Notes under the pieces: generated by a model
The model's input: only the letters and a program-made list of their open reading frames with translations
Databases searched by the model: none
What the model was told of the DNA's origin: nothing
Program-made: the position numbers and the translations under genes
In this document: in pieces, positions 26,376 through 54,994 of the stretch
Numbering within the stretch: the first letter of the stretch is position 1
Layout of the letters: each line of letters opens with the position of its first letter
From: Anaeramoeba ignava BMAN
Taxonomy: Eukaryota > Protista > Anaeramoebae
Reading direction: 5' to 3'
Assembly: GCA_028826165.1 (NCBI GenBank)
Contig: JAPDFW010000080.1
Span: 124,001-188,000 of the forward strand
DNA: 64,000 bases

Positions 26376-27920
26376 ATGAATATAAATTTTGAAAATAAAT
26401 CACAACTTTTTTCAAGTATTGAAAAACTATATTTATCACCAGAATTTTACGATTTTCAAATTCAAATCAAACAAAACGAGCGAATTCAACGAACATTTTT
26501 ATGTCACAAAACAATTCTTTGGAGTAGAAGTGAATATTTTCAAGGATTGCTAAGAAGCCAAATGAAAGAAAACATTGAATCCAAAGTAATTTTCCAATCA
26601 TTCTCAGTAAATGCGATGGAATCAATCCTCCGCTTTATGTACACTGGCTCAATGGAAATCAATCCTGATAATGTGATTGATATTTTACTAATTGCAAAAA
26701 GATTATTCATTTTGGATGAAAAATTGATACCCTTTCTATATCACTTCATTACTCAAAATCTTGACACAAAAAATGTCATTGGAGTTCTAAGATTTGCAAA
26801 GCACTATCAATTTGACGAATTATATATTAACTGCCTCAGGTTTATAATCCAGAACTTCGACAATATTTATACAAATAAAGAAATACTCACACTTTCGGAA
26901 AAAGATTGGATTTCAATTTTATCTGATCCTTCTTTTTCACCTTCAATTCCCGAAATGCAACTCTTTAAAACTCTTGTTAAATGGGGTGAGTTCAACCTGA
27001 ATTTCGTCGTGGAACCTTCAGCAAACCCCTCAGATAAACAACTGCAGAAAATCCAGAAAAAACTATCCAAATGTTTGAATCAGATTCGATATTCTGATTT
27101 CAAATTTGATGAACTTGTTCAAATCCAAAAATACAACATTATTCCTTCACAAATCCTTGAGGATGCATTTCAATTCCATGAAAACCCACTAAACAAACAG
27201 AAAATCATCAAAAAATATTCCAAAAAAAAATCATCCATTTTCAACACAAGATTTATTCCCTTTAAGGATTCCAAAATCATCACTAAGCATCACAAACATT
27301 TTGCGGAAATCCTCCGCAAATGGATCAACGATAATGATTTTTTTGATCAGATGAGAATGGGCTTTTCGGGATCAAGAGATGGCTGGGACGCAACAATATT
27401 TCACAATAAATGCGACCAAAAAGGAAAATCACTTGTAATCATCAAATCAAAAAACGGGAACATTTTTGGCGGTTTTACTGCAAAGGGTTGGAATTTTGAG
27501 CGGTGGAAATGGGACCGCGTTGATATTTATGATAATAATTATGGATATATAACTGATGAATCTGCTTTTTTGTTTTCTTTGGTTAGTCCAAGTTCAAAAT
27601 TCCCTCAATTTTTCCCTATTAAACCTCAAAAATTTGCTATTGAATATTCCCCAATTATGGGTCCTGCTTTTGGTGATCTTTATGTTGGTAATTTTGGCAA
27701 TATGAAAATCGGTAATTCTAAACTTTTTGGTTGTTGTTATCAACTTCCTGTTGGTATTGTTAAGAAATCAAAACAAGCTCGTGAATTTTTTACTGGTATT
27801 GAAAATTGGGAAGTTGAAGAATTAGAGATACATTTTATTTTGAAACATGATTTAAATGAAAATTCAAATGAAAATTCAAATGAAAATTCAAATGAAAATT
27901 CAAATGAAAATTTAAATTGA
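26376..27920 (+). CDS. BTB/POZ-BACK-TLDc protein
   Basis: BTB: DFQI..FLCHKTILWSRSEYFQGLL..MKE, ILRFMYTG. BACK: CLRFI..NF..LSEKDW..IL, EMQLFK.LVKW. TLDc: GSRDGWDATIFHNKCDQKG.SLVIIK..NIFGGFT, GPAFG. Intronless. Confidence 0.9.
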   Translation: MNINFENKSQLFSSIEKLYLSPEFYDFQIQIKQNERIQRTFLCHKTILWSRSEYFQGLLRSQMKENIESKVIFQSFSVNAMESILRFMYTGSMEINPDNVIDILLIAKRLFILDEKLIPFLYHFITQNLDTKNVIGVLRFAKHYQFDELYINCLRFIIQNFDNIYTNKEILTLSEKDWISILSDPSFSPSIPEMQLFKTLVKWGEFNLNFVVEPSANPSDKQLQKIQKKLSKCLNQIRYSDFKFDELVQIQKYNIIPSQILEDAFQFHENPLNKQKIIKKYSKKKSSIFNTRFIPFKDSKIITKHHKHFAEILRKWINDNDFFDQMRMGFSGSRDGWDATIFHNKCDQKGKSLVIIKSKNGNIFGGFTAKGWNFERWKWDRVDIYDNNYGYITDESAFLFSLVSPSSKFPQFFPIKPQKFAIEYSPIMGPAFGDLYVGNFGNMKIGNSKLFGCCYQLPVGIVKKSKQAREFFTGIENWEVEELEIHFILKHDLNENSNENSNENSNENSNENLN

Positions 27921-41479: not shown

Positions 41480-43740
41480 TTATTTTTTGGAAAGAACTAA
41501 AAAAGTAACTGCAATTGAAAATAAAAAAAAAGTGCCAAAAAATATCAAAAAATTTCTTTTTCCGTGGATTTCTTTGAAATAGAAAATACTCCAAAGAGAT
41601 GAAACAACAATAGGTCCAATACAAACAATAGGATATCCAACAGAAAATCCCAAAGTTCTTGTTGAAATAAACCAGGCAACAGAAGCAGTTCCCCAAATAA
41701 GTCCTGATATAAAGCTTGGGAACAAAACATCCATTGAAAATAGAGGTTTAACAAATATAGAATAAGTCACTACGCCTACTAAACTTGCAATAAATATTCC
41801 TGTGAAATGAGAAAGAACAAAATCAAATTGTCCTGAATTCGGATTATTTCTTGACCAAATCATCATCGGAATTAGATTAACTCCTGTAAATATTCCGATT
41901 ATAACTACACTCATTACTCCAATGAAATGTCTTGATTTTGTTCCCATTTTTCGGATTTTTTTCAGTAATTTTGGATCGTTTCTTTCTTTTAAATAATTAA
42001 CAAATTTATTTTCAAAATCAAAATCAAAATCAAAATTAAAATCTGTTTCTTGATAGTTTTGTTTTAATTTGATTTTTTCTTCTTTTTCTTCTTTTTCTTC
42101 TTTTTCTGTATATATGTCTTGCCATTCTGTTTCTGTTTCTTGATTTTTATTATGATTTTGATTTTGATTTTGATTTTTATTTTGATTTTGATTTTGATTT
42201 TGATTTTGATTTAAATTATGATTTTGATTTTGATTTTTATTTTGATTTTCTTCAAAATTGATTTCTTCCCATTGAATTTCTTTTTCCATTGATTTCCTTT
42301 TCTTTGTTTTATCAAGACTTGGCTTAATGAAATAAAATAGAATTAAAGCAAATAGAGCTAATAAAACACCTAAAATACTATAAGCTTCTGATTTAACTTT
42401 TTCTTTTGTTGCTCCAAATAACCCTAATCTTCCAACAAGATAACTTTTATTTTTAAATTGAATTTTTAAATTGAATTTGAATTGAATTTAAATTTAAATT
42501 AAATTGAATTTTTGAATTGAATTGAATTTTTAAATTGAATTGAATTTAATTTAAATTGAATTGAATTTTTGAATTGAATTGAATTGAATTTTTGAATTGA
42601 ATTTAATTGAATTGAATTGAATTTAAATTGAATTGAATTGAATTGAATTGAATTGAATTGAATTGAATTGAATTTAAATTGAATTGAATTGAATTTAAAT
42701 TGAATTGAATTGAATTTTTAAATTGAATTGAATTTTTAAATTGAATTGAATTGAATTGAATTTTTAAATTGAATTGAATTTAAATTGAATTGAATTGAAT
42801 TGAATTAAATTGAATTGAATTGAATTAAATTGAATTGAATTGAATTGAATTTAAATTGAATTGAATTGAATTTGAATTGAATTGAATTGAATTAAATTGA
42901 ATTTTTAAATTGAATTGAATTGAATTGAATTTAAATTGATTTGAATTGAAATGAATTTGAATTAAATTGAATTTAAATTGAATTAAATTGAATTAAATTG
43001 AATTGAATTGAATTGAATTTAAATTGAATTGAATTGAATTGAATTAAATTGAATTGATTTGAATTTAATTGAATTTGAATTGAATTGAATTGAATTAAAT
43101 TGAATTGAAATTGAAATTGAATTGAATTGAATTAAATTGAAATTGAATTGAATTGAATTGAATTGAATTAAATTGAATTGATTTGAATTTAATTGAATTT
43201 AATTGAATTGAATTGAATTGAATTTGAATTGAATTGAATTAAATTGAATTAAATTGAATTTGAATTGAATTGAATTAAATTGAATTAAATTGAATTGAAT
43301 TGAATTAAATTGAATTGAATTAAATTGAATTAAATTGAATTTAAATTGAATTTGAATTGAATTGAATTGAATTGAATTGAATTTAAATTGAATTTAAATT
43401 GAATTTAAATTTTTAAATTTCGAAAATACCCAACAATTAAATTTGTTCCTGAAGAAAATAAAAAACCAACACCCAATCCAACAAATTCTAAACCAATAGA
43501 AACAAACATATTCGCAAATCCAATGAAAATCCCACCAATAATACCAGATTTCACAAAAATTGGATGTTCAGGAATAAATACAGTTAAAAGACCAATTAAA
43601 AAAATTCCATTTGATAAAATAAATTGAAAAATCATTCCATCTCCAAGTTTGTTTTGAACTTTATTAACAGGAGCAAGATAAGAACCAAAAAATATTGCTG
43701 CTATAAATGAGGCCAGATACCCTAAAGAAGCTGAAGTCAT
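41480..43740 (-). CDS. TMEM144: TMEM144-family (DMT superfamily) transporter; exons 43740-43430, 42443-41480
   Basis: FFGSYLAPV..GDGMIFQF, VGLGVG..LIVG|YLVGRLGLFG, FVLSHFTGIF, PSFISGLIWG, GYPI..GP..VSSLW..FYFKEI. Confidence 0.88.
42450..43410. repeat. (GAATT)n pentamer satellite filling the TMEM144 intron
   Basis: Direct repeat. Confidence 0.92.
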
Positions 43741-45908: not shown

Positions 45909-47931
45909 ATGGAACATCCAAACAAACCTAAAAATAGCGCATTTAAACAACAAAGACTAAAGGCTTGGCAACCAATTTTAACACCACGTCCAGTAATAAC
46001 CACATTTTTTATAGTAGGAGCAGTATTTGTTATAATTGGAGTTGCACTTACTGTTTCAACAAACAAAGTCAAAGAATCAAAAATTGAATATACAGATTGC
46101 CCCCTAAACTCAACTTGCACAAAATCCATCGGTAATTTAGGGATTTTAATTTTAATTTTGATTTTAATTTTATAAATGAATTTTAATTTTAATTTTAATT
46201 TTAATTTTAATTATAATTTTAATTTTAATTTTAATTTTAATTATAATTTTAATTTTAATTTTATTTTTAAATTTTAATTATAATTTTAATTTTAATTTTA
46301 ATTTTAATTTTAATTTTAATTTTAATTTTAATTTTAATTTTAATTTTAATTTTAATTTTAATTTTAATTTTAATTTTAATTTTAATTTTAATTTTAAATT
46401 TAAATTTTAATTTTAATTTTAATTTTAATTTTGATTTTAATTTTAATTTTAATTTTGATTTTAATTTTAATTTTAATTTTAATTTTAATTTTAATTTTAA
46501 TTTTAAATTTAAATTTAATTTTGATTTTAATTTTGATTTTAATTTTATAAATGAATTTTAATTTTAATTTTAATTTTAATTTTAATTTTAATTTTAATTT
46601 TAATTTTAATTTTAATTTTAATTTTAATTTTAATTTTATAAATGAATTTTAATTTTAATTTTGATTTTATTAGAAATTTCTGACAAACTTTCAAGTCCAG
46701 TTTATATGTATTATCAACTCACAAACTATCATCAAAATCATAGAAGATATGTTAAATCTCGTTCTGATAAGCAATTAAGAGGTGAAAAGGTCTCTTTTAA
46801 AGATTTGGAGATTTGCAAACCTCGTCGTTCTTTAGATGATTCTAGTTCTCCTGATAAAATTTATATTCCTTGTGGTTTGATTGCTTATTCAAAATTTACT
46901 GGTAATTAAAATTTAATTTAAAATTTACAATTTACAATTTACCATTTATAACTTTTGATTTATAACAAAAATAAATATTACTTTTTATTAGATATATTTG
47001 AATTAGGTGATGGAGCATCAAATTTTACTTTATCTAAAGGTGATATTGCATGGAATTCAGATGTTACGAAAAAATTTCAAGTAAATTTAAATTTTAAATT
47101 AAATTCAAATTTTAAACTAAATTCAAATTTTAAATTAAATTCAAATTTTAAATTAAATTCAAATTTTAAATTAAATTCAAATTTTAAATTAAATTCAAAT
47201 TTTAAATTAAATTCAAATTTTAAATTAAATTCAAATTTTAAATTAAATTCAAATTTTAAATTAAATACAAATTTTAAACTAAATTCAAATTTTAAATTAA
47301 ATTCAAATTTTAAATTAAATTCAAATTTTAAATTAAATACAAATTTTAAATTAAATTCAAATTTTAAATTAAATTCAAATTTTAAACTTGAAAAAGAATC
47401 CTAATCCATTTCCTGTAGGAATTGAAATCCAAAGAAATTTCGAAGATCCTGATTTTGTAAATTGGATGAGAGTGGCTGCTCTTCCAACTTTCAGAAAACT
47501 TTATGCAAAAATTGATCAAGATATTGAAAAAGGAACATATAATTTATATATTAATAACAGTAAATATTCTTAAACATGAAATGAAATGAAATGAAATTTA
47601 AAAATATTCTTAAACATGAAATTAAATGAAACTAAATTTAAAAATATTCTTAAACATGAAATGAAATGAAATGAAATTTAATTAAATTTAACTTTTATTC
47701 CCTTTTTTTTTGTTTTTTTTTGAAATAGCATATGAAGTTAGTTCTTTTGATGGAACAAAAACAATTATTTTAACAACTACTTCATGGGCTGGTGGTAAAA
47801 ATATATTTCTTGGATCTGCTTATCTTGCTTTGGGATCATTTATAATTGGAATTGGAATATTTTGTTTAATTACTCATTTAGTTGCTCCAAGAAAACTTGC
47901 AGATACAACTTATCTTCCTTGGAAATCTTAA
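45909..47931 (+). CDS. CDC50: CDC50/LEM3 P4-ATPase flippase beta subunit, 5 exons
   Basis: KPKNSAFKQQRLKAWQPILTP, PVYMYYQLTNYHQNHRRYVKSRSDKQL, PCGLIA, IAWNSD, FVNWMRVAALPTFRKLY, TTSWAGGKNIFLG. Confidence 0.96.
47085..47385. repeat. 18-bp tandem repeat (AATTTTAAATTAAATTCA) filling CDC50 intron 3
   Basis: Direct repeat that gives the spurious NFKLNS read-through. Confidence 0.9.
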
Positions 47932-48166: not shown

Positions 48167-51100
48167 TTAATTCATAATTTGAGTTTTTGATTTTGAAAGA
48201 GTTTTTGGTTTTTCTTTTTTTGAATCTTTTTTTGAGTCTTTTTTTGAATCTTTTTCTGAAGGATTTGGTGTTACTATAGGATCCATTGTAAGATTTTTTT
48301 TAACAAGACGTTTATATTTTGTTTTAGTTTTTTGTTGAGATTTTGTTCTTGCAATTGGAGTTTTTGTGTTTTTTGATTGTAATTTTGATTGAGATTTTGA
48401 TTGTAATTTTGATTGAGATTTTGATTCTTGTTTTTTTTGAGGAGATTCTGTTGTTAAATCAACAGAAGAATCCTGTTTATTTTCATTTGATTTTTCATTT
48501 AATTTTTCATTTGATTTTTCATTTGATTTTTCTTTTTGTTTTGGATCAATAACTTCTTCTTTTTCTTTGATTTTTGGAGAGTAAATTTTTGCTGCATGTG
48601 CATGAATTTTCTTTTTTGATTTTTCGTTTGTTTTTTGTCGTGTTACTGTTGCTTCAACGATTGAATAAGGTTTTTTTTTATCACTATTTTTAGTTTGATC
48701 TTTTAAATCACTTGATTTATTAATTTCTTTTCCTTTTCCTTTTTTTTGGAGAATTCGAATTTCATATTTGCAATTTTTTTTAACAAAATCTTCAAATTTC
48801 ATAAATCCTCCACCAACACGAACAACAACAAAACCTAATGAAATTATTTTTTTTGAATGAATTTTTTTTTTAAATGGAATTATTTTTAACATGAATTATT
48901 TTTTAAATGAATTATTTTTTTTGAATGAATTATTTTTTTTGAATGGAATTATTTTTTTTTGAATAGAATTATTTTTGAATAGAATTATTTTTGAATGAAT
49001 TATTTTTTTTGAATAGAATTATTTTTGAATAGAATTATTTTTTTGAATAGAATTATTTTTTTTTGAATAGAATTATTTTAGAATGAATTATTTTTTTTGA
49101 ATAGAATTATTTTTTTTTGAATGAATTATTTTTTTTGAATAGAATTATTTTTTTAAATGGAATTATTTTTAAATGAATTATTTTTTTTGAATAGAATTAT
49201 TTTTTTTTAAATGAATTATTTTTTTTGAAATGTATTATTTTTGAATGAATTATTTTTTTAAATGAATAGAATTATTTTTGAATGGAATTATTTTTTTTGA
49301 ATGAATTATTTTTTTTTAAATGAATTATTTTTTTTAAATGAATTATTTTTTTAAATGAATTATTTTTTAAATGAATTATTTTTGAATGAATTATTTTTGA
49401 ATGAATTATTTTTTAAATGAATTATTTTTTTAAATGAAATGTTTGAATTCCTTTTTTTTTCAATTAAGTTTACCTTCAAGTATTCGAAGTGAAATTTTTC
49501 TTGTTCCGAAAATATAAAGTGAATCTAATTTATCTGGATTAAATTTTAATTCTTTTACATTAAAGGGAACATTATATTTTTTCAAAACATTTTTAACTTT
49601 TAATGCAATAACTTTGGATATATTCTTTGAAATCAAAGAAGGGTCTTTTTCAGGAATAAAAATTGCTATTTTTTTTTGAAATTTGAAATTTGAATTTAAA
49701 ATTTGATTTGAATTTAAAAATTTGATTTGAAATCTGAAATTTGATTTAAAATACATTTTGGATCACTTAATTCACCATAACCATTTGCATTATGAGCATG
49801 AACAGCTAAAGAATAAGATTTTCCACTTTCAAATTGTTCCAAAGAAATAAAATGCTCGAGAGTCTCAATAGATTTTGAATTATCAACAAGAACCTCATAT
49901 TTATCAATAGGCAATCCATTATCAAAAGGAGGATCCCATTTTGCAATTAATTGTTGTAATTTAAGAAACTTGATTTTATCAGGAACACCAGTTTCAAGAT
50001 GAAAATCCAACAAGTCACACCAATCTCCAACAACAAGCTCATTGATGCATCTGACACGAGCAGAATAAAACAGGCGGGGATTGAGATCACTGAATTTAAA
50101 CTCGGTATTTTCTGTCGAAATAATTTTCGGTTGGACGTTTGTTGATTGCTCCTTCTCATTCATTTCAATTTCATAAGAAATAATTTTAAGTCTTCTTTTT
50201 GAAGGAGGAAACCAACTCAAAATGATCTCCTGATTTTTCTGTGTGGTTTTGAGATTTCTGACTAGTCCTGGATAACCATTTAATGTTTTATTTTCCTGTA
50301 AGTTACTCCAATTCCCAAATCCCACAGAATTATGAGCTCTTATTTTGAGCGAGTATTTCTTATTCATTTGAAGTTTCTCAAAATTGTATTTAAGTTCGCT
50401 TGTTGATAACGGTTCTTTTTCACCAGAAAATTCGATTTGATAAAAATCGATTGGTGATCCGTTATCATTTGGAGCTTCCCATTTGAAATCCAAATTTTGA
50501 TATCCTTGAGTGCAGGAAATTGACTTGATAACTCCTGGAATTCCAAGAAATGTTGAGTATGTTTTTGGTTCACTCCAATCGGCAAATCCCTTTTGATTTT
50601 TGGCACGAATTCTGATCTCGTAGTTTTTCCCTGACTCAAGTCCATCAATAACAGCTTCAATTTGGCTGCCTTTTTCACCACTGATTTCCTTTACTATTTT
50701 CCCATTTACTTCAATGTGATATCCTTCTATTTCTGCACCACAATCACTCGGCTGTTCCCATGATAATTTCAAATGGTTTATTCCTTCATCTGTGCAATTT
50801 ATGTTTTGTATTTTTTCAGGGACTTTTGTGAGTGTTTTAAATTCAACAGGATCGCTCCATTCACCAGCTCCATTTTGGTTGTTTGCGCGAATAGATACCT
50901 TGTATGATTTACCAGGCGAGAGGGAATCAAGTGTTATTTGAGGAACAAAGGATGTGAATATTTGATTTTGATTTTGATTTTCAATTAAATTTTCATTTGA
51001 ATTTAATTTCCCCATTTCTTCCATCTTGATCTCATAAAATTTTATTGTTTCTCCTTGATTTTGTGGTTCTTTCCATTGCAAATCAACAGAATTTTCATGT

Positions 51101-54100
51101 ACATTTTTTTCAATATCACAAACTTTTGATGGAACCCCTGAAATTGTTTTAAAAGTAAATGATTGACTCCAATCAGAAAAACCACTTTCATTCGCAGCAC
51201 GAACACGGATTGTATGTTCGGATCCTTGTGACAAGCCTGAAAACAAAGAAGAATTAATAGAAGATTGGAGAACTTTTCCGTCAAATTCAACTTCATATAA
51301 TTTAATTTGAGATCCTTTATTTGTTGGCGGATCCCAATCAAACTGGAGACTTTGAGGAAAGGGGGTGCATCGAATGGGATTTACTGGATAAGGTGGTTCG
51401 TCAACGACGAATATGTCTTTGGGCTTTGACCATTGACCGAATGCAGAAGGATTATCTGATTTTGCGCGGATTCTGATGGAATGATTTCCGGGAGATAATG
51501 TCCCTAATTCCTTGCGTGGATTTTTCACTTCATCGATTATTTTCCCATCAACTTCAACTTGGTAGCTTGAGACCGTTATTCCCCCTGTTTCGGGTACGGC
51601 CCAGCTCACCTCAAACCCTTCCTTTGTTGGCGAAACCTCGATTCCTTCCACTATTCCTGGAGCATCTGCATCTGTTTTGAATGTTTGCTCTTCGCTCCAT
51701 TCTCCATATCCAAGCGCGTTTTTTGCACGCACTCTCACACGGAATTCAGTTCCGCCAGGAAGATCCCCAATTTGTGTAAAAGGGGTTTGTGTTTCTTGAG
51801 AAATTTTTCCGTTGATTTCAATTTGATATCCTTCAATTCGGATATTTTTTTCATTTTGCGGCTCCTTCCAATCCAAATTTAATTCGTGTTGTTTCGCAAA
51901 ACAATTGATTTCTTTGATTTGATTTGGAGCGGTTCCTTCTGTTGTTATGTGAATAAAATCGCTCCATTCTCCATAACCTACTTGGTTTTTGGCGCGAACT
52001 TGAATATGATAAATTTCATTGGGAATCAATTTGTCTAAAACTATTGATGGGTTGGTGCATTTTATCTGATAAGGTTCTTTACCAGGAGCATATACTTGTA
52101 CTTCATACCCCTCTATTGAGGATCCTCGATTATCGGGAACATCCCATGCTAATCCGAGTGTTGTTGATTTTTTTTCGGCACATTTTAAATTTTTAATTTT
52201 TTCAGGAACTAATTTTTTTTTTAAAGAAATTTTATATAATTTTTATATAATCTTCTTTTTAACTTTTTTTTTCTTTTGGAATAATTTACCTTCCTTCTTT
52301 TCTTCTGGCTTTTTTTTTTTGTTAGAATTTTTAAAAAATAAAAAATTTTTTTCATTATTTTTTTTCATCCAATTTAAATATCTAAAAAAAACTAATAAAT
52401 GAGCATATATAACATACATTAAGTTGTTCATAATTTTTAAAATATGAGAGATATGTTATCACAGAAAGTTTATCAGGTTCTATCAGCATATCTGCAGGAT
52501 CAAGTAGTTGAGGGATATTTAAAACTTCATTTGCTTTTTGGAATGCAAGTTCAAGAATTTTTTCTGGTTGTGACTTAAATAAAGCAATAAAAAAAATGGA
52601 AATATATTTTGTGAATTTAGTTGATGATTTAAAAGTGAAAAAAAATTTTTTTTCAAAAATACTTTATCAAGTTCACTAATATTAATAGTTCCTGGTTTTA
52701 ATTTATTTATTAATTCACATAATGCTATTCCATCTTTAAGACTATAATTTTAATAATTTTAATAATTTTAATAATTTTTATAATTTTAATAATTTTAATA
52801 ATTTTAATAATTTTAATAATTTTTATAATTTTAATAATTTTAATAATTTTTATAAAAGAAATTGATACCTTGTTGTTAAGCTATCAATTCTAATTCCAGT
52901 GGATTCAAGTTTATTTCTTAACCAATCAAGAAGTATATCTTGAATTGATTTTGTTTTTTCATCATTTTCCGAAGAAATATGATATCTACGAATTAAAATC
53001 CAAATCAATCCAAGTGTTATCTTTAAATTTTGATCAACAAGATCTTTAAAATTATTTTAATTTTAATTTTAATTTTAATTTTAAATTTATAAATGAATTT
53101 TAATTTTAATTTTAATTTTATAAATGAATTTTAATTTTAATTTTAATTTTATAAATGAATTTTAATTTTAATTTTAATTTTAATTTTAATTTTAATTTTA
53201 ATTTTAATTTTAATTTTAATTTTAATTTTAATTTTAATTTTATAAATGAATTTTAGTTTTAATTTTAATTTTAATTTTAATTTTAATTTTATAAATGAAT
53301 TTTAATTTTAAATTCAATTTTAATTACCTTGACTTCCTATATTTACTAATTCCATCGAATTTTTTGGTTTTACTTCTTCTATAAAATTTAATGCAATATT
53401 GCAATTAGAAATTTTTTGAATTTTTAAACTTGGTTTTTGTGCTATTTTTTGTCTGCAATTTTTTCCGGAAAGTAATTCTACTAAATGAAGAAGACGAACT
53501 CCATCAGAAAAATCTCTTCTTATATTATTAATTGATAAACTTCTTTTTTTTAGATAAGTATTACACCATCTTGTAAAGGTCTTGAATTTTAAGTTGAATT
53601 AAAATTAAAATTGAAATTAAAATTGAATTTAAAATTAAAATTAAAATTGAAATTGAAATTAAATTTTAATTTAAAATTGAAATTGAAATTGAAATTGAAA
53701 TTAAAATTGAATTTAAAATTGAATTTAAAATTGAATTTAAAATTGAAATTAAAATTGAAATTAAAATTGAATTTAAAATTGAAATTGAAATTAAAATTGA
53801 AATTAAAATTGAAATTAAAATTGAAATTAAAATTAAAATTAAAATTGGAATTAAAATTGAATTTGAAATTGAAATTAAAATTGAATTTAAAATTGAATTT
53901 AAAATTGAAATTAAAATTAAAATTGAATTTGAAATTGAATTTAAAATTAAAATTTGAATTTAAAATTGAATTTGAAATTGAATTTAAAATTAAAATTTGA
54001 ATTTAAAATTGAAATTTGAAATTGAAATTTGAAATTGAAATTGAAATTGAATTTGAAATTGAAATTGAATTTGAAATTGAAATTGAAATTAAAATTGAAA

Positions 54101-54670
54101 TTAAAATTGAAATTAAAATTGAAATTGAAATTAAAATTAAAATTAAAATTTAAATTAAAATTGAAATTAAAATTGAAATTGAATTTGAAATTGAAATTAA
54201 AATTAAAATTAAAATTGAATTTGAATTTGAAATTGAAATTGGAATTGAAATTAAAATTAAAATTGAATTTGAAATTAAAATTAAAATTAAAATTTAATTT
54301 GAATTTAAAATTGAATTTGAATTTAAAATTAAATTTGAATTTAAAATTTGAATTTGAAATTGAATTTAAAATTGAAATTGAATGGAATTTTAATTTTGGA
54401 TTGTTGATAGAAATGTATCATTTTTTAAAACATTTTCTTGTAAAAAGTTTTGTAAATGTAAAATTAAATAAAATTCTTTTTTTTTTAAAAAAAACTTGTG
54501 AAAAAAATAAATTAAGAACAAACACAAAGCTTCATAAATTAACGATTTTAATTGATCAAAAAAAAAAACAAAAATTCAAAAAAAAAAAAATTACAACGTT
54601 TTACTTTCATTTGAGTTCTAATCCATTGAGGAAGTTTATTTTCATCTTGAACATCATAAATATCTGTCAT
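48167..54670 (-). CDS. CH-CH actin-binding domain + 9 x FN3 + GAR (GAS2) domain + basic tail; 9 exons
   Basis: ATG 54670. ABD: WIRTQMK|TFTRWCNTYL..DFSDGVRLLHLVELLSG..NCNIALNFI..LVNIGSQ|DLVDQNLKITLGLIWILI..LLDWL..SLKDGIALC.LI..IPQLLDPADM..PDKLSVITYLS. A 19-nt exon lies at 52308-52290. FN3 exon is 52208-49755. GAR: YIFGTRKISLRILEG|FVVVRVGGGFMKFEDFVKK (exons 49665-49474, 48834-48167). Confidence 0.88.
48870..49440. repeat. GAATTATTTTT(T)n array in the intron splitting the GAR domain
   Basis: Direct degenerate repeat. Confidence 0.85.
53590..54380. repeat. (AAATT[G/A])n hexamer array in intron 1 of the CH-FN3-GAR gene
   Basis: Direct repeat that gives the spurious KL-repeat ORFs. Confidence 0.9.
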
Positions 54671-54994
54671 TTGTATTTTTTGTGTTTTTTGTATTGTTTT
54701 TTGCATTATTTTTTGTAATTAGAAAAAAATTGAAATGATAATAATAATAATAAAAATAAAAATAAAAAAGAAAAAAGAAAAAGGAAAAATTAAAAAAAAA
54801 AAAATAAGAAAAAATAAAGATTGTTTTCTCAAGATCATTTTTTATTTTTGATTTTTTATTTTTTCCTTTTCATTTTTTTCTTTTTTTCTTTATTCTTTAT
54901 CTTTTTTTTTTTAAAGAAATCAAATCAAATTTCAATTTAAAATCAAATTAAAATCAAATTAAAATTAAATAAAATTAAAATTAAAATTAAAAAA

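Follow-up and report, generated by a model that had tools for sequence, protein, structure and literature searches.

The animal spectraplakins (MACF1/ACF7, dystonin and Drosophila Shot) begin with a tandem CH head, which is followed by a long rod and, at the C-terminal end, by a GAR domain and a basic tail. Crosslinkers of this type are regarded as an opisthokont or animal elaboration of a CH plus GAS2 core. The same layout is found in a gene of Anaeramoeba ignava BMAN, a relative of Metamonada, which lies on the minus strand at 54706-48167 of the window, the whole stretch of 64,000 nucleotides (nt) analysed here (contig JAPDFW010000080.1, positions 124,001 to 188,000). The predicted job is also the same, namely to link F-actin to the microtubule lattice. 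The spectraplakin rod consists of plakin/SH3 and spectrin repeats, whereas the rod of the window protein comprises nine fibronectin type III (FN3) domains. Spectraplakins carry an EF-hand pair before the GAR, and their GAR has a zinc site; by Pfam the window protein has no EF-hand, and its GAR lacks the zinc site. The spectraplakin tail contains GSR repeats and SxIP EB1-binding motifs, while the Lys/Ser-rich tail of the window protein has neither. Its head is nearer to filamin and alpha-actinin (E about 1e-14) than to MACF1 and plectin (about 1e-7).

GAS2 and GAS2-like proteins, together with protist CH-GAS2 proteins, likewise have CH and GAR in one polypeptide, with the GAR fold and the tubulin contacts conserved. 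Proteins with CH and GAS2 have been reported from Amoebozoa, from fungi and from choanoflagellates, and a ciliate is reported to have a GAS2 domain (PMC9145010). GAS2 proteins have a single type-3 CH and a short hinge to the GAR, whereas in the window protein two CH domains, CH1 and CH2, are separated from the GAR by a rod of about 800 amino acids (aa). Filamins have the closest actin-binding domain, that of filamin A/B, and a beta-sandwich rod in common with the window protein. However, the filamin rod is composed of filamin/ABP280 Ig repeats with a C-terminal dimerising repeat, while the window rod is of the fn3 type, lacks the dimerising Ig repeat, and is followed by a GAR instead.

Two protist proteins are also comparable at the C-terminal end. 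Anaeramoeba flamelloides KAJ3451208.1 (P0027, 6,329 aa), named 'fibronectin type III domain-containing 3ba-related', likewise has a long FN3 array directly followed by a C-terminal zinc-free GAR. The core of this GAR (LEGYAVIRVGGGFMKFDEF) is very close to that of the window protein. It has about 47 FN3 matches and no detected CH, compared with nine FN3 domains and a tandem CH in the window protein. Trypanosoma brucei SNAP1, composed of a coiled coil and a GAR-like domain, is likewise a protist protein whose C-terminal GAR is without most zinc ligands.

Among the papers searched, none joins a GAS2 domain with FN3, or Anaeramoeba with fibronectin, and the layout was not found described. The original prediction, that no characterised protein is known with this architecture, agrees with this for the complete layout, but is narrowed by the CH plus GAS2 proteins of protists and by the uncharacterised FN3 plus GAS2 giant of A. 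flamelloides. Judged by its predicted domains, the window protein is spectraplakin-like in layout, yet outside the spectraplakin, GAS2-like and filamin families. The comparison with spectraplakins and GAS2 proteins was apt: the head is filamin/alpha-actinin-like and not a single type-3 CH, and the rod consists of FN3 and not of spectrin repeats.

The gene comprises nine exons, which join into 1,365 codons with zero internal stops in a local count. The eight introns are all GT..AG, measure 81-1,024 nt, and have 3-16% GC, compared with 22-42% GC in the exons. Their phases are compatible, as had been predicted. Domain searches were done exon by exon, and the spliced product was used for the length and stop count alone. 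The features are as follows.

54706(54670)-54605, minus strand: exon 1, start codon and lead-in to CH1, ending ...QWIRTQMK before a GTAAAA donor
53580-53328, minus strand: exon 2, most of CH1
53043-52869, minus strand: exon 3, end of CH1, inter-CH linker and start of CH2
52741-52663, minus strand: exon 4, middle of CH2
52573-52418, minus strand: exon 5, end of CH2
52308-52290, minus strand: exon 6, putative 19-nt micro-exon, PEEKKE and the first base of Val
52208-49755, minus strand: exon 7, nine FN3 domains, 2.45 kb, 817 aa
49665-49474, minus strand: exon 8, N-terminal half of the GAR (from helix 1 through strand 3)
48834-48167, minus strand: exon 9, C-terminal half of the GAR (VVRVGGGF...), then the Lys/Ser-rich tail and the TAA stop codon (48169-48167)
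54604-53581, 53327-53044, 52868-52742, 52662-52574, 52417-52309, 52289-52209, 49754-49666 and 49473-48835, minus strand: the eight introns, GT..AG

The five elements of the original prediction were all found on the minus strand and in the expected order, and paralogues give independent support. Its start codon should probably be revised. It was placed at 54670, the second in-frame ATG, but another in-frame ATG lies 12 codons upstream at 54706, with an in-frame stop five codons further upstream. The ATG at 54706 is the more likely translation start.

The head is split over several exons. The end of exon 1, QWIRTQMK, continues as TFTRWCN in exon 2, which is the usual start of CH1. Exons 2, 3, 4 and 5 match colinear pieces of the Pfam CH profile (positions 6-79, 4-28, 31-54 and 65-107, respectively). 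The E-values are 4.4e-11 for exon 2, 4.6e-6 for exon 4, and 5.6e-5 for exon 5, and the match of exon 3 lies in its second half. The nearest solved relatives of exon 2 are filamin A/B (6.7e-15, residues 51-127), followed by the alpha-actinins, and exon 3 aligns to filamin A 132-185, directly after the filamin A stretch of exon 2. Filamins and alpha-actinins rank (E about 1e-14) well before MACF1, plectin, dystrophin and spectrin (E about 1e-7). By these matches the head is a classical CH1-CH2 actin-binding domain of the predicted filamin/alpha-actinin type.

The rod is contained in exon 7, which matches Pfam fn3 at E=4.3e-97 in nine stretches, the number of repeats expected. The Pfam scan of this exon gave fn3-type families only, with zero filamin-repeat, spectrin, plakin or SH3 matches. 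Eight delimited repeats measure 87-104 aa. Since they are only 26-40% identical to each other in pairwise comparison, the array is taken to be old. A homologue search with exon 7 returned generic FN3 proteins only, at no more than 27% identity, and a metagenome scan gave zero matches. A role of the FN3 domains outside the cell was considered and rejected: the end domains are both of cytoskeletal type, and the hydrophilic exon 1, inspected by eye, shows neither a signal peptide nor a membrane segment.

The putative micro-exon between the head and the rod has 42% GC within introns of 11-13% GC, with AG before it and GTAAAT after it. Read on into exon 7 it gives ..EKKE-VPEKI.., which corresponds to the KKE-PEKI linker ahead of FN3 units in a paralogue on contig C69. 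The remaining FN3 units of exon 7 mostly show Val ahead of the opening Pro.

Exons 8 and 9 were compared with an unsplit GAR of the same genome, L001 on contig C93, and with profile A2, which was built from protist GAR domains that are relatives of L001. In hhalign, exon 8 matches A2 columns 24-63 (92.8%, E=4e-7) and exon 9 columns 67-94 (97.1%, E=6e-11). Because they match neighbouring column ranges, the two exons are read as abutting halves of a single GAR, split by an intron as had been proposed. Exon 8 also matches residues 15-68 of the L001 GAR (E=1e-4). The two best solved matches of exon 9 are MACF1 GAR chains, both weak (E about 0.2).

For L001 itself the GAS2 score is 25 bits in the scan of the genome and 20.7 bits by hmmscan, against a Pfam gathering threshold of 21.3 bits for this domain (PF02187). 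Its solved sequence relatives are GAS2 and MACF1 GAR only. A HMMER scan of L001 against 1.84 billion representatives gave 14 matches, and the 10 of these relatives that were scanned with Pfam all exceed the GAS2 cut-off (23-42 bits). A protein homologue search with the L001 GAR region gave zero matches. The AlphaFold2 model of this GAR has a pLDDT of 87.8, and contains a helix (H2-30), five strands, and a helix (H83-103), which is the textbook GAR order. The four best Foldseek matches of the model are the PDB GAR structures 5x57, 1v5r, 5ve9_C and 9kbw_A (probability 0.97-1.0), and the next has 0.44. The modelled L001, to which the window exons align, thus has the GAR fold of five antiparallel strands and two flanking helices.

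In the cryo-EM structure of GAS2 on microtubules, residues R242, R252, G254-256 and W257 contact tubulin (PMC12084551). By alignment, these contact residues are kept in the window GAR. The equivalents are the strand-3 Arg in SLRIL (exon 8), the strand-4 Arg and GGG in VVRVGGGF (exon 9), and a Phe that replaces the Trp. The tail after the GAR contains 186 aa, of which 48 are Lys (26%) and 26 are Ser (14%). Its isoelectric point (pI) is 10.0, and the predicted Lys/Ser-rich character is borne out.

Contig C69 of the same genome holds two inverted paralogue copies. Each has CH1, CH2 in three exons, an FN3 array, a split GAR, and a Lys/Ser/Thr-rich tail, on one strand.

G000:C69:432600-443600 (L014, L015): C69 copy with CH-CH, FN3 and GAR
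G000:C69:271300-280400 (L016, L017): C69 copy with CH-CH, FN3 and GAR

The C69 exons are 31-65% identical to the window exons and have the same exon ends. Identity is 50% for exon 3, 65% for exon 4, and 60% for exon 5, which ends at the same place (...YF.NY..LN). Intron positions are shared, and the GAR is split at the same place as in the window gene (LEG|..RVGGG). On C69 a single plain phase-0 intron of 85 nt joins CH2 to the FN3 array and leads into an open frame of 1,339 codons. The arrays consist of near-identical 264-nt units, with 24 and 17 unit starts. They are interrupted by several frame breaks, whose positions differ between the copies and which may be homopolymer errors of the long-read assembly, or decay. 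A changed genetic code was rejected, as the in-frame TGA stops within the C69 matches fall in introns.

All GAR loci found in the genome (the window gene, two on C69, and those on C84, C93 and C64) come after FN3 domains, and their heads differ. In L001 the FN3 domains and the GAR are in one uninterrupted open frame, and the basic tail is present in this C93 copy also. Two further loci were recorded.

G000:C84:234150-243700 (L009, L003): DUF5765-headed gene (DUF5765 E=2e-19), with an FN3 and GAR match further along the same strand
G000:C64:326400-327800 (L019): broken FN3-GAR copy, a fragment of the C84-type end with frame disruptions, adjoining an RCC1-BTB gene

The C84 locus suggests that the FN3-GAR cassette has been reused with a membrane-type head. 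The C64 copy is probably a pseudogene.

Both CH and FN3 domains are heavily used in the 42.8 Mb genome. It has no fewer than 146 matches to CH, among them several fimbrin-like runs in which four CH domains share an open frame, and a first look gave 454 FN3 candidates. Two intron-less alpha-tubulin-like genes, L020 (G000:C116:68563-69879) and L021 (C70:392070-393401), encode 438 and 443 aa, respectively; both are divergent and without the usual acidic C-terminal tail. More canonical tubulin matches of the genome are split by introns, such as the beta-tubulin L024.

An HSP70 of the genome shares 80% identity with one from A. ignava and no more than 74% with any other sequence, in agreement with the amoeboid anaerobe of the original prediction. 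Sequenced Anaeramoeba genomes are AT-rich and have more than 30,000 introns, except for the GC-rich and intron-poor A. pumila (preprint 10.64898/2026.04.11.717937). The window is very AT-rich, with 10-37% GC in 2-kb steps, and introns 1, 2, 3 and 8 consist almost wholly of short AT-rich tandem repeats. These repeats give long spurious open reading frames (ORFs) on the opposite strand, for example at 53611-54000 and 54029-54718 ('KLKLNLKL...'). A search for sequencing runs listed none that is recorded as RNA; one run contains 0.58 of the words, which is compatible with exons only or with DNA minus tandem repeats. The gene is flanked by unrelated opposite-strand genes, a protein kinase from 54995 and a last CDC50 exon ending at 47931. 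Elsewhere the window contains a BTB-BACK-TLDc protein in a single open frame (26376-27920, plus strand) and the C-terminal part of a TMEM144-type transporter (41480-42289, minus strand).

Outside this genome, the GAR subfamily without the zinc site (FGTKKIY...RVGGGYM.FEEF) is common in metagenomes of aquatic origin, and one scan gave no fewer than 466 relatives. The GAR is usually C-terminal in domain-poor ORFs (JGI/ENA contigs L028-L107). The ten longest of these environmental ORFs have the GAS2 domain only, with weak coiled-coil matches in two, which loosely recall SNAP1. Around a GAR on environmental contig L013, coiled-coil-like pieces were found and no CH or FN3. In the 80 environmental GAR loci that were fetched, an HMM of the window units found no FN3, and phmmer with the window CH exons found no CH, while control paralogues were detected. 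This absence is suggestive and not proof, because most contigs are short.

The gene model, the domain identities, the fold of L001, the contact residues and the recurrence in paralogues were all established in silico. Several points weigh against an actin-microtubule crosslinker encoded by one gene, and are taken here with the rivals that they concern. Transcription as one mRNA, the micro-exon, and the binding of actin and of microtubules are inferred from the sequence. Frame compatibility by itself is weak evidence for one gene, and the parts could be two or three adjacent transcription units, for CH-only, FN3 and small GAR proteins, that were wrongly joined. Where DNA is AT-rich, GT..AG pairs that keep the reading frame are readily found. 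The frame between exons 5 and 7 is kept in three ways, by the micro-exon or by direct joins from the weaker donors at 52413 and 52392, and with three donors and one acceptor a chance frame-keeping join is expected in most cases. The 19-nt exon of the original prediction thus keeps the support of its GC contrast and its linker match with C69, but shares the place with two other joins, and stays a putative exon. Unspliced exons 5 and 7 each reach a stop within 11-13 codons, and an ATG at 49756 opens the frame of exon 8. Yet the first Met of exon 7 is residue 395 of 817, and a start there would truncate four domains; upstream coding exons are therefore required. The gaps between the parts are intron-like and measure 81-210 nt, with no room for a promoter. 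A single gene is favoured because exon 7 has no early Met, exon 2 has no start codon of its own, the C69 loci have the same order and exon ends, and FN3 and GAR share one continuous frame in L001. The strongest support comes from the two C69 loci, where the same order and intron positions recur and one canonical intron joins CH2 to FN3. One gene with this architecture, presumably transcribed as a single mRNA, is thus very probable, and wrongly joined units are improbable. It is more improbable still that the gene, as part of an expanding repeat family, is silent or in decay and now has no function. The frame breaks in the near-identical C69 arrays and the fragment on C64 would fit such decay. 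However, the copy in the window keeps all of its 1,365 codons intact, each of its nine FN3 domains still matches the FN3 profile in spite of their age, and the breaks on C69 may be assembly errors.

The main doubt concerns microtubule binding by a zinc-free GAR. The GAS2 profile gives a divided answer: the scanned relatives of L001, and L001 in the genome scan, pass the threshold, but exon 9 alone reaches 15.8-18.3 bits (profile positions 46-64) and exon 8 alone has no Pfam match. The zinc site Cys-Cys-Asp-Cys is absent. Exon 8 has zero Cys, profile A2 has no conserved Cys, and the single Cys of exon 9 (KKNC) is near the place of the C-terminal zinc ligands. The structure of the animal GAR is maintained by zinc, and a zinc-site mutation in MACF1 abolishes microtubule binding. 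A scan of the tail for [ST]x[IL]P found no SxIP motif, and ahead of the GAR neither exon 8 nor the end of exon 7 has an EF-hand match in Pfam. A zinc-free GAR might instead bind proteins, as proposed for GAS2L3 and SNAP1. The gene would then encode an actin-anchored scaffold, for example one that tethers an organelle, a symbiosome or the centrosome region to actin. The degenerate GAR of T. brucei SNAP1 does not bind microtubules (PMC10656233) and is not needed for localisation, and the FN3-GAR cassette behind the membrane-type DUF5765 head on C84 would fit a general tethering module. SNAP1, however, lacks four of the five basic contact residues, whereas in the window GAR a pair of Arg, the GGG hairpin and an aromatic position are all kept, and the protein adds CH and FN3 domains. 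A strongly basic tail follows the GAR in the window, C69 and C93 copies, and the L001 model folds confidently without zinc. With the contact residues and the basic tail in favour and SNAP1 as a caution, the balance tips slightly towards a protein that truly crosslinks actin and microtubules, and a scaffold that does not bind microtubules is rather unlikely.

As a crosslinker, the product of this nuclear gene would be a cytosolic protein, about 1,365 aa long, by which actin filaments and microtubules are connected. The N-terminal filamin/alpha-actinin-type tandem CH would bind F-actin. The nine diverged FN3 domains would serve as a beta-sandwich spacer rod of about 30-35 nm, estimated from the usual FN3 size. 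The GAR would insert its Gly-Gly-Gly hairpin, together with the neighbouring Arg residues, at the intradimer groove of tubulin in the manner of GAS2, and the Lys/Ser-rich tail (pI 10) would add electrostatic grip on the acidic microtubule surface. Such a role suits a fan-shaped amoeba; in Anaeramoeba, microtubules extend radially from an acentriolar centrosome (PMC11550330).

The gene is read here as an independently assembled actin-microtubule crosslinker. Proteins with CH and GAS2, or with FN3 and GAS2, are already known, and it is the combination that is new. The logic of actin head, rod, GAR and basic tail would be the same as in spectraplakins, but reached with another kind of rod domain, in a lineage that neighbours Metamonada. 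As the same layout is made from different parts, it is argued to be a repeatable solution and not a single invention. The protein also provides a natural experiment on folding and microtubule binding by a GAR that has no zinc site.

A wider and more tentative possibility is that a modular family of proteins that tether microtubules arose within Anaeramoebae themselves. Its members would comprise an FN3 array, a zinc-free GAR and a basic tail, with different heads grafted on. The head would be filamin-type in the window and C69 copies, a DUF5765 membrane head on C84, and none recognisable on C93 and in the A. flamelloides giant. If this is true, the family would parallel the spectraplakin/GAS2 system of animals by convergence, and would tie the radial microtubules to the actin cortex as well as to membranes, perhaps with the symbiosome-hydrogenosome mass among them. 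The window protein is a candidate for coupling the centrosomal microtubule array to the cortex in a fan-shaped anaerobic amoeba.

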